DNA of 60,924 nucleotides from assembly GCF_032062105.1 (NCBI RefSeq), contig NW_026940658.1, forward strand, positions 62,001-122,924. Direction: 5' to 3'. Every line of letters starts with the position of its first letter. The first letter of the stretch is position 1. Below, piece after piece: positions 43,998-45,433 of the stretch. A program made the translations under genes and the position numbers. Source of the DNA: Saccostrea cucullata. Its lineage: Eukaryota. The notes beneath the pieces were generated by a model. It had not been told where the DNA came from. It did no database searches and saw only the letters and a program-made list of their open reading frames with translations.

Positions 43998-44239
43998 ATG
44001 CACGGAAAAATTTTCATCTTGATTCTTGCGGTGCTGCCATGTTTGTTCCTGTATAAATCTGATGGTTTGGTCATTGATGAACGTTGGTATTCGCCAGGAC
44101 GTACGGACTTCGTGTTGGACAACCAATTCTACACTCTTCTAGGTAAAGTATTTTCCCATTCTATAAAGTGTATCAGATGAAATGTAATGGTGGCGATCCT
44201 TAAATCCCTACAGAAAACAATTTGGAGTATTTTTTAAAA

Positions 44240-44273
<34 letters not shown>

Positions 44274-45433
44274 GTTTAACCTTCAAGAAAATACAAGTAG
44301 TTCCCTGTAACTGCATTTCAATATTCAAGCCAAAGCTTAAGGTACTCAAAATGCTCATAAAAATGTGTTGAAAATGTGAAGATTTTATATACAGAAAGGA
44401 GAAGTAATTCCAAACTCACGGACCTTAGGAAAGCTCAGCTAACCCGCGTCAGTGAACAAGGCGTCAACAAATACAATGTCAAAGGTGACGCAAATGACGC
44501 AGCGATGATCTTTTTTAGCCTGAAGCCAACAAGTGTAACTTATGTGAGTTTTTTTTCTTCCTTGGTATATTTTGTCAGAAATTATAATCTTGTAGAAGAG
44601 TGATTTGATAATCTAAATATAAGATTTTTAACATGTACCCCCCCCCCAAAAAAAAATCGTAGTTATGCAGATTATCGAACAAAGACATAATTAATTTTAG
44701 TGGAGAAATATCAACGAATATTTGAATTTTAACCAATTTATAACCCGCTAATTAATTTTTTTTCCACATTTGAAACTTAAGTAAATGATATTTCATATAT
44801 TTCCAACAGAAAGTTCCATCGATATATCGGTGTGGTCGGAGACGCTGCAGCAGAAGAAGGTACAGGATAAGGAGCAGATATAGGCGGAAGTACGTGAACA
44901 GAAAGAGAAGGGCGCGTAAAATGAGGAAATGGGTCCGAAAGTATGGTGGTCAAAAAGTAAGAAAATATAACCGGAAGATCGTGCGAAAATCAAGAAAAAA
45001 TGGTCGAGGAAAAGTAAGACGGAAACATAGAAAATCTGGTTATAGACGAAAGAGGCGAAAAGTTAGAAGAAGCAGAAAAAGGTCCAGAAACGGGAGAAAG
45101 AAATGGAGGAAGAAATTAAGAAAAAACAGGCGAAGAAAATATAGAAGCAAGAGAAAGAGATGGGGGAAGAAATCAAGAAGAAGCCGACGTAGGCGGTCTA
45201 GGGGAAGATGGAGATCCGGAAGATGGTCCCGGAAGTACAAAAGTAAATATTTCGAGGCCTCCGGAAAGGTTGGTGTGTACAGAGTATCGCTAAAAATAAA
45301 ACCGTACAGTACCCAGATCGTATTTCTTTCGCCCAGAACAAGGTCTCTCTACAATGGCAGTGGAGGCATAACACGCATCTATAATTTCAAGCCGGCTCGA
45401 GTATCTTGGTGGCGTTTGATAAAATTGTTTTGA
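43998..45433 (+). CDS. Uncharacterised secreted protein (~305 aa) with an internal protamine-like Arg/Lys block, 3 exons
   Basis: Exons 43998-44142, 44395-44543, 44810-45433 have canonical GT-AG sites and compatible phases (1, 0). Signal-peptide-like start MHGKIFILILAVLPCLFLYKSDG; no stops; aataaa at ~45584. Confidence 0.8.

Follow-up and report, generated by a model that had tools for sequence, protein, structure and literature searches.

An oyster gene annotated as "luc7-like protein 3" encodes a leader-bearing protein with a constrained, acid-free polybasic block between two conserved segments

Introduction

Protamines and protamine-like sperm nuclear basic proteins (SNBPs) are nuclear proteins without a signal peptide, which are either small or based on the winged helix of histone H1. 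Sandcastle-worm cement Pc proteins and diatom silaffin precursors are secreted, strongly cationic low-complexity proteins that pair with polyanions; they are repetitive and rich in Lys/Gly/Tyr or in Lys/Ser, and silaffins are processed into units. The KRMPs of pearl oysters, which belong to the basic shell matrix proteins, are Lys-rich, about 100 amino acids (aa) long and carry a Gly/Tyr domain. Another shell matrix protein, Songin of Hyriopsis, has a mature region of 53 aa (PMC13756312). The myticalins combine a conserved signal peptide with a hypervariable mature peptide of 23-42 aa, a conserved Lys-Arg site and an anionic C-terminal extension, and form a multigenic family of many paralogues (PMC5577615). 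Molluscidins are short, and their precursors have neither a signal peptide nor a pro-region (PMC5577615). Here, we describe a gene of the hooded oyster Saccostrea cucullata whose 305-aa product resembles each of these groups in part. It lies in a stretch of 60,924 nucleotides (RefSeq assembly GCF_032062105.1, contig NW_026940658.1, positions 62,001 to 122,924 of the forward strand), which we call the window and from whose first letter all positions are counted.

A first-pass annotation of the window, made from its letters, had drawn attention to a secretory-type protein with a protamine-like block set between two ordinary-looking segments. In the following we show that the gene is transcribed and under purifying selection in all its parts, and that it belongs to a narrow new family. 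The general kind of this family is known, namely lineage-restricted, secreted, low-complexity cationic proteins of molluscs. The layout is new for that kind, since a 140-residue, acid-free and Arg-dominated block stands between two conserved ordered segments.

Results

The window is AT-rich animal DNA, and the gene lies on its forward strand together with all features given below. Three coding exons (43998-44142, 44395-44543 and 44810-45433) are separated by introns which, as read in the window sequence, have GT..AG borders and phases 1 and 0; joined through a split GAA codon, they encode 305 aa. Their translations agree by eye with the 305-aa RefSeq model XP_062594522 (P0001 in the following) of S. 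cucullata, which carries the label "luc7-like protein 3"; in the searches, P0001 represented the entire protein, next to the single exons. The first-pass annotation had proposed a gene of three in-phase exons and about 305 aa. The coding exons were borne out by this model and by transcripts, and the exon total had to be revised: a non-coding 5' exon (approximately 43670-43758, with a donor GT at 43759) splices to 43985, which brings the gene to four exons. Exon 2 (43985-44142), as read from the sequence, the transcript contigs and the mRNA contig L014, contains the start codon at 43998, the leader and the beginning of the N-terminal domain (N-domain). Translation, transcripts and alignments place the most conserved part of that domain, from LRKAQL to GDANDAA-x-IFFSLKP, in exon 3 (44395-44543). 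The coding part of exon 4 (44810-45433), supported by translation and transcripts, holds the end of the N-domain, a C-x4-C motif, the basic block, a beta-like tail and the stop codon.

The splice joints predicted from sequence at 44142/44395 and 44543/44810 are both present in spliced contigs from four runs of four studies, in which all three coding exons are covered; the former joint was recorded as 44140>44393, with the cut shifted by +2. At 90-99% identity to the window, mostly 95-99% or 90-95%, these contigs therefore stem from a close relative or a different lineage; 20 of the 40 differences listed for the related-lineage contigs are synonymous. Both joints also occur in two full-length mRNA contigs from S. 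cucullata itself, L014 and L015 (runs SRR26159594 and SRR26159588), whose 305-aa proteins are 98% identical to P0001. L014 aligns to 43715-43759 and then to 43983-44142, and ends with poly(A) at 45605. The loose ends of contigs X1, X2, X6 and X12 match the non-coding 5' exon and extend for 80-85 nt 5' of the joint at 43983. At most 13% of the sampled words were present in any one run. Word depth in contigs, a poor measure of expression, was as low as a few in X6, lay in the hundreds elsewhere and exceeded 10,000 at its highest. Because it reached hundreds to more than 10,000, the transcript of this gene is not rare.

The protein consists of a leader, an 81-aa N-domain with a net charge of +3, the C-x4-C motif, a basic block of 140 aa and a tail of 61 aa with a net charge of +10. 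According to a scripted composition count, the block (44828-45247; protein residues 105-244, which are residues 7-146 of the third coding exon) contains 55 Arg and 29 Lys, hence 84 of 140 residues (60%), and no Asp or Glu. Against a background of 12%, this excess of Arg and Lys has a binomial P of 2e-41. Scattered through the block are eight Tyr and five Trp, and the sites that proprotein convertases might recognize are numerous (23 R-x-x-R, seven R-x-[KR]-R and 46 dibasic pairs). Apart from one 12-nt doublet, no tandem DNA repeat was detected in the block, nor were repeated peptide units. The tail (45248-45430) ends in VSWWRLIKLF, and four beta strands are predicted in it. The lengths, the manual residue count, the richness in basic cleavage-type sites with scattered aromatic residues and the beta-like tail given by the first-pass annotation (about 80, 140 and 60 aa, with some 84 Arg/Lys and no acidic residue in the block) agree with these results.

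The same annotation had noted a start resembling a signal peptide, and this reading holds up in comparison. Residues 1-23 (43998-44066), delimited by hydrophobicity and by the small residues at -3 and -1, comprise an n-region with Lys and a hydrophobic core of 14-15 residues, with a Kyte-Doolittle mean of 2.6-3.3 over 12 residues. The n/h/c pattern is kept in five lineages, with leader sequences that are 17% identical between the two groups of relatives described below. Such a leader would be expected to direct the protein into the secretory pathway. Its removal would leave a mature protein of 282 aa and 34.9 kDa, with a net charge of +97 and an isoelectric point of about 12. This mature protein has exactly two cysteines, C106 and C111 (C106-x4-C111, 44831-44848), which an alignment of the full-length relatives reveals to be invariant and which may form a disulfide or take part in cross-linking.

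The family appears to be small. In the S. cucullata genome, the N-domain and the tail match the window locus and one further contig, C12464, and no paralogues were found. This 42-kb contig runs parallel to the window for over 10 kb in collinear order, with 88-99% identity, and contains an intact copy of the gene (C12464:17640-19146; L008 3640-5146) with six amino-acid differences, which RefSeq has annotated separately as XP_062622227 (LOC134283761). C12464 is most likely the uncollapsed other haplotype, and the gene single-copy. The orthologue of S. echinata (P0002) has 286 aa, is 76% identical and lacks 19 residues of the variable part of the block. In both species a Cys_Met_Meta_PP gene follows downstream of the orthologous locus (L009 in S. 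echinata), so that the loci are syntenic. An open frame at 52756-53034 of the window matches an exon of a pyridoxal-phosphate (PLP) enzyme of Cys/Met metabolism.

More distant relatives came from transcript contigs. When 1.84 billion representatives were searched exhaustively by HMMER with an N-domain profile, P0006 (303 aa) was added; a word search contributed P0029 (313 aa), which represents 81 clustered sequences. The two have 40% identity with P0001 and share its entire layout of leader, N-domain, C-x4-C, block and tail, with 45% Arg plus Lys and a single Glu in the block. The fragments P0008, P0009 and P0011 are single exons that run into introns and leave the two intron positions unchanged. 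Word searches with the tail, the N-domain and the N-domain of P0006 returned P0001, P0002, P0006 and P0029 only, and no annotated protein of Crassostrea, Ostrea or any other mollusc was among the matches of any search. Four further profile matches (P0007, P0010, P0012 and P0013) were rejected as relatives; they are long repeat proteins in which many weak stretches sum up. The lone locus of a JGI metagenome scan, L017, was dismissed as a chance match. Another JGI metagenome contig, L016, carries exon 1 of the relative P0011. Two copies of a repeat resembling an open reading frame (SREGSLSCHTCCDTGPRFF..., at 4-159 and 824-1090) flank this exon, the downstream one within the presumed intron; from its sequence, the repeat looks like a bivalve interspersed element.

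All parts of the protein are under purifying selection, as demonstrated by exon-by-exon Nei-Gojobori counts of the ratio of non-synonymous to synonymous substitution rates (dN/dS). Between S. cucullata and S. echinata the N-domain has a ratio of 0.16, the block one of 0.27 and the tail one of 0.22; for the pair P0006 and P0029 the corresponding values are 0.21, 0.46 and 0.07. The window and the haplotig differ by six non-synonymous and 13 synonymous changes. Between the Saccostrea and the P0006/P0029 group, identity amounts to 52% in the N-domain and 38% in the tail, and within the block to 42% in the first third and 33%, with many gaps, in the remainder. Net charge stays between +80 and +97 across the family (four lineages). 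Among the invariant features are motifs around LRKAQL and around GDANDAA-x-IFFSLKP, an RRYRxRxRY run, several tail positions and, within an island that the alignments place at K150-K158 (44963-44989; KY-[NG]-x-[RK]-KIVRK), the columns K150, Y151 and K154-K158. To judge from these alignments, the block is not a free-running spacer, because it contains invariant features such as the RRYRxRxRY run and the KY..KIVRK island; its first third is constrained in sequence, and the rest mainly in charge and length.

The first-pass annotation had not recognized the family, and the searches were of the same verdict. In Pfam, no match at E <= 10 was obtained for the exons, for P0001, P0002, P0006 or P0029, or for the flanks. 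Sequence profiles of the PDB searched with the N-domain and the tail returned nothing except one chance row (E = 0.16), and a feature search of the ESM Atlas with the whole protein and the N-domain gave no usable match. A literature search by RefSeq identifiers and name, run accessions, conserved motifs and keywords found no paper on the protein, which RefSeq holds only as a misnamed or uncharacterized model. Since no Pfam family matches any part of it, the RefSeq name must derive from the Arg-rich low complexity, and we regard the label "luc7-like protein 3", on the sequence evidence, as a compositional artefact. Identity with LUC7L3 was rejected given that the LUC7 zinc-finger domain (PF03194) is missing, a leader is present and the block contains neither Glu nor Asp.

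Structure prediction gave a faint outline of the flanks. AlphaFold2 reached a predicted local distance difference test score (pLDDT) of 39.6 with 2 rows, and a pLDDT of 49.3 with a predicted template modelling score (pTM) of 0.33 with 14 rows. The second model, of low confidence, suggests helices at residues 42-51, 56-64 and 81-90, a strand at 73-77 and the four strands of the tail, and draws the block as long helices with middling confidence. In the first model, pLDDT peaks at 67-74 around residues 121-150, the stretch to which the conserved island K150-K158 was assigned. A Foldseek comparison with the PDB listed mostly NTF2/SnoaL/ketosteroid-isomerase structures in its top rows (E 0.3-2, probability <= 0.2). 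In the VIA search with the second model, the two best rows align residues 72-305 minus the block, so that residues 72-100 and the tail are matched jointly to compact alpha/beta chains, at a Z of 5.4-5.8, which is below the stated background of the tool. The shape search of the Atlas gave TM values of at most 0.28 by query and nothing above background. A two-chain test of the N-domain against the tail scored 0.00, a value that counts neither way because the alignments were left unused and the partner's own fold is uncertain. The idea that both flanks build one fold, from which the block protrudes as a loop, is compatible with the weak second model, and nothing more.

The start of the 5' exon (43670-43758) is approximate, being placed by the L014 alignment and the loose contig ends. 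About 35 nt 5' of the furthest transcript reach, a TATATAA (43631-43637) was read in the sequence as a candidate TATA box and may serve as promoter element. Sequence and transcript ends define a 3' untranslated region (45434-45605) with two poly(A) signals and sites. The proximal signal is ATTAAA (45443-45448), with a site at about 45465 that is marked by a poly(A) loose end in X2; the distal one is AATAAA (45584-45589), with a site at about 45605 where L014 ends in poly(A). The two sites lie about 140 nt apart, and their usage differs among the transcript contigs. The window allele also has an upstream ATG at 43741 in the 5' exon, which opens an upstream open reading frame (uORF) of 29 codons (43741-43758 plus 43985-44056) that continues through the splice and extends over the main start codon in a different frame. 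One extra A in the haplotig, L014 and L015 reduces this uORF to three codons. The intron between the first two coding exons contains a long poly(T) run (44241-44271), and a poly(G) run (45724-45745) lies about 120 nt beyond the distal poly(A) site.

Discussion

Our preferred explanation, to which we give a probability of roughly 0.4, is that the protein is an intact secreted polycation that binds extracellular polyanions, with a leaning towards structural or physiological secretion (matrix, cement or mucus) over arms-race defence. The leader would bring the protein into the secretory pathway, and the mature protein of about 35 kDa and about +97 would act largely intact. With its high density of charge, the block would then bind or condense extracellular polyanions electrostatically; candidates are sulfated or phosphorylated polymers of matrix and mucus, acidic proteins of shell or cement, and nucleic acids. 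The ordered ends, together with the Cys pair, may position or cross-link the polycation. Structural or physiological secretion is favoured because the gene is a constrained single copy rather than a member of an arms-race family, because neither a neutralizing pro-region nor fixed cleavage sites are present, and because a variable low-complexity part, prone to indels and set between conserved ends, is reminiscent of secreted matrix proteins. A secretory-type leader combined with a basic low-complexity region, as in the basic shell matrix proteins, is found here. Several points weigh against this explanation. The 46 dibasic pairs make the block an obvious convertase substrate, so that its survival intact is an assumption; none of the known matrix, adhesive or mucus proteins is similar to it; signal-peptide cleavage is deduced from the leader pattern, and the fold of the flanks from models of low confidence. 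The word depth of the contigs, with the weakness noted above, lends little weight to abundance.

The protein could also be a host-defence polycation of haemocytes or mucosal epithelia that kills microbes or traps them, or binds nucleic acid outside cells, with its Arg/Lys/Trp/Tyr-rich block acting like an extracellular protamine or histones. Membrane-active cationic peptides typically have a composition like that of the block, and the mRNA appears abundant by contig word depth. A hydrophobic periodicity of 3.6 residues in the block points in the same direction at a nominal p = 0.017, but loses significance once corrected family-wise (p = 0.33). The gene itself behaves differently: it is present once, in a syntenic locus, and both its dN/dS and its non-synonymous polymorphism are low, whereas bivalve linear antimicrobial peptides such as the myticalins are multigenic, with hypervariable mature peptides, a conserved dibasic site and an anionic extension (PMC5577615). 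Moreover, the oyster protein has no anionic pro-region, and its mature form of 282 aa is about ten times as long as a usual antimicrobial peptide. We therefore consider a defensive role doubtful. Improbable in our view is the related proposal of the first-pass annotation, a convertase-processed precursor from which furin-type cuts would release cationic peptides and/or a free N-domain and tail. It can draw on the seven R-x-[KR]-R, 23 R-x-x-R and 46 dibasic pairs of a protein that would enter the secretory pathway, and on an R-P-R-R directly ahead of the tail in the P0006/P0029 group. Yet the R-x-[KR]-R positions differ between Saccostrea (132, 213, 225 and 227) and the other group (115, 118, 141, 245 and 287), and in Saccostrea none lies at either domain boundary. 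The segments between the basic runs are mostly 1-7 residues long and unrepeated, and the entire block, including a conserved non-basic island, is under purifying selection. Both the processed-peptide reading and that of a classical antimicrobial peptide are weakened because there is no fixed furin-type site, no anionic pro-region and no gene family.

A further alternative keeps the physical properties of the preferred explanation and changes the compartment: the protein may be a packaging factor that neutralizes and compacts stored polyanions inside the granules of haemocytes or gland cells. Since it has no acidic partner region of its own, a separate polyanionic partner would be needed during transport, which suits such a role; no known analogue has this layout, and we see a slim prospect for it. 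The least probable of the explanations is that the leader is non-functional and the protein a nuclear, nucleolar or sperm-chromatin basic protein of protamine-like or RNA-binding type, in line with its RefSeq name. Its composition does resemble that of protamines and of RS/RK-rich nuclear proteins, and polybasic runs serve as nuclear localization signals. On the other hand, the leader is conserved as a pattern rather than as a sequence in five lineages, no LUC7, linker-histone or protamine Pfam domain is found, and the conserved Cys pair and non-basic flanks are atypical of protamines.

Returning to the intact secreted polycation, we speculate on a bolder version of it, which we hold to be tentative and rather unlikely as a whole. 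The family might represent not only a new family but possibly a new fold, in which the N-domain and the tail form one small, ordered alpha/beta domain that bears a 140-residue loop of about +84 with a Cys staple at its base, and this loop would condense extracellular polyanions of the oyster. Such a "polycation on a handle" could be the cationic coacervate partner in shell, cement or mucus, or an extracellular trap for nucleic acids.

Few conserved secreted proteins carry about one net positive charge for every three residues, and such a protein raises questions about export, namely how a polybasic chain is translocated, how it is exposed to convertases and how its charge is neutralized in transit. 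Should the oyster protein prove to be the cationic partner of matrix, cement or mucus, materials based on coacervates would have a natural model in it; as a defensive molecule, it would stand out among polycationic effectors by its size and its conservation. Two practical consequences concern existing and future data sets. The wrong RefSeq name "luc7-like protein 3" will mislead expression studies, and standard shotgun proteomics of oyster shells or secretions may easily have overlooked the protein, because the fragments that trypsin would leave of the block are only one to a few residues long.

Comparison with Described Systems

In gene organization, the myticalins and modiocalins come close. 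They share with the oyster gene the bivalve host, a signal peptide, an Arg-rich, Tyr-containing cationic region and a lineage-restricted occurrence, as well as a non-coding first exon and a phase-1 intron. Unlike the myticalin genes, the oyster gene exists in one copy, its leader drifts and its 140-aa block is subject to purifying selection; the encoded protein has no conserved cleavage site, no anionic part and no sequence similarity to the myticalins. The precursor pattern of a myticalin-type antimicrobial peptide was rejected for it, as the N-domain has a net charge of +3 and the tail of +10, and there is no fixed R-x-[KR]-R. The molluscidins of oyster and abalone gill are alike in their dibasic repeats and in their occurrence in molluscs, including oysters; in contrast to them, the protein described here has 305 aa, a leader and two conserved non-basic segments.

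The likeness to nuclear proteins is one of composition. Protamines are similarly Arg-dominated and acid-free, and identity with a protamine or protamine-like SNBP was rejected on account of the leader, the conserved non-basic flanks and the absence of a protamine or linker-histone Pfam match. With LUC7L3 it shares an Arg-rich low-complexity run and nothing else.

The basic shell matrix proteins KRMP and Songin resemble the oyster protein in being predicted to be secreted, basic and lineage-restricted, and they too contain a low-complexity region prone to gains and losses of residues. They do not have a 140-aa Arg-dominated block between ordered segments, and they are not similar to it in sequence. 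Compared with the Pc proteins of sandcastle-worm cement and the silaffins, the block of the oyster protein is Arg-dominated, non-repetitive and bordered by conserved ordered flanks, and the sequences are unrelated. Nevertheless, it is these polycations of complex coacervates and biominerals that supply the working analogy for the mechanism which we propose for the oyster protein.

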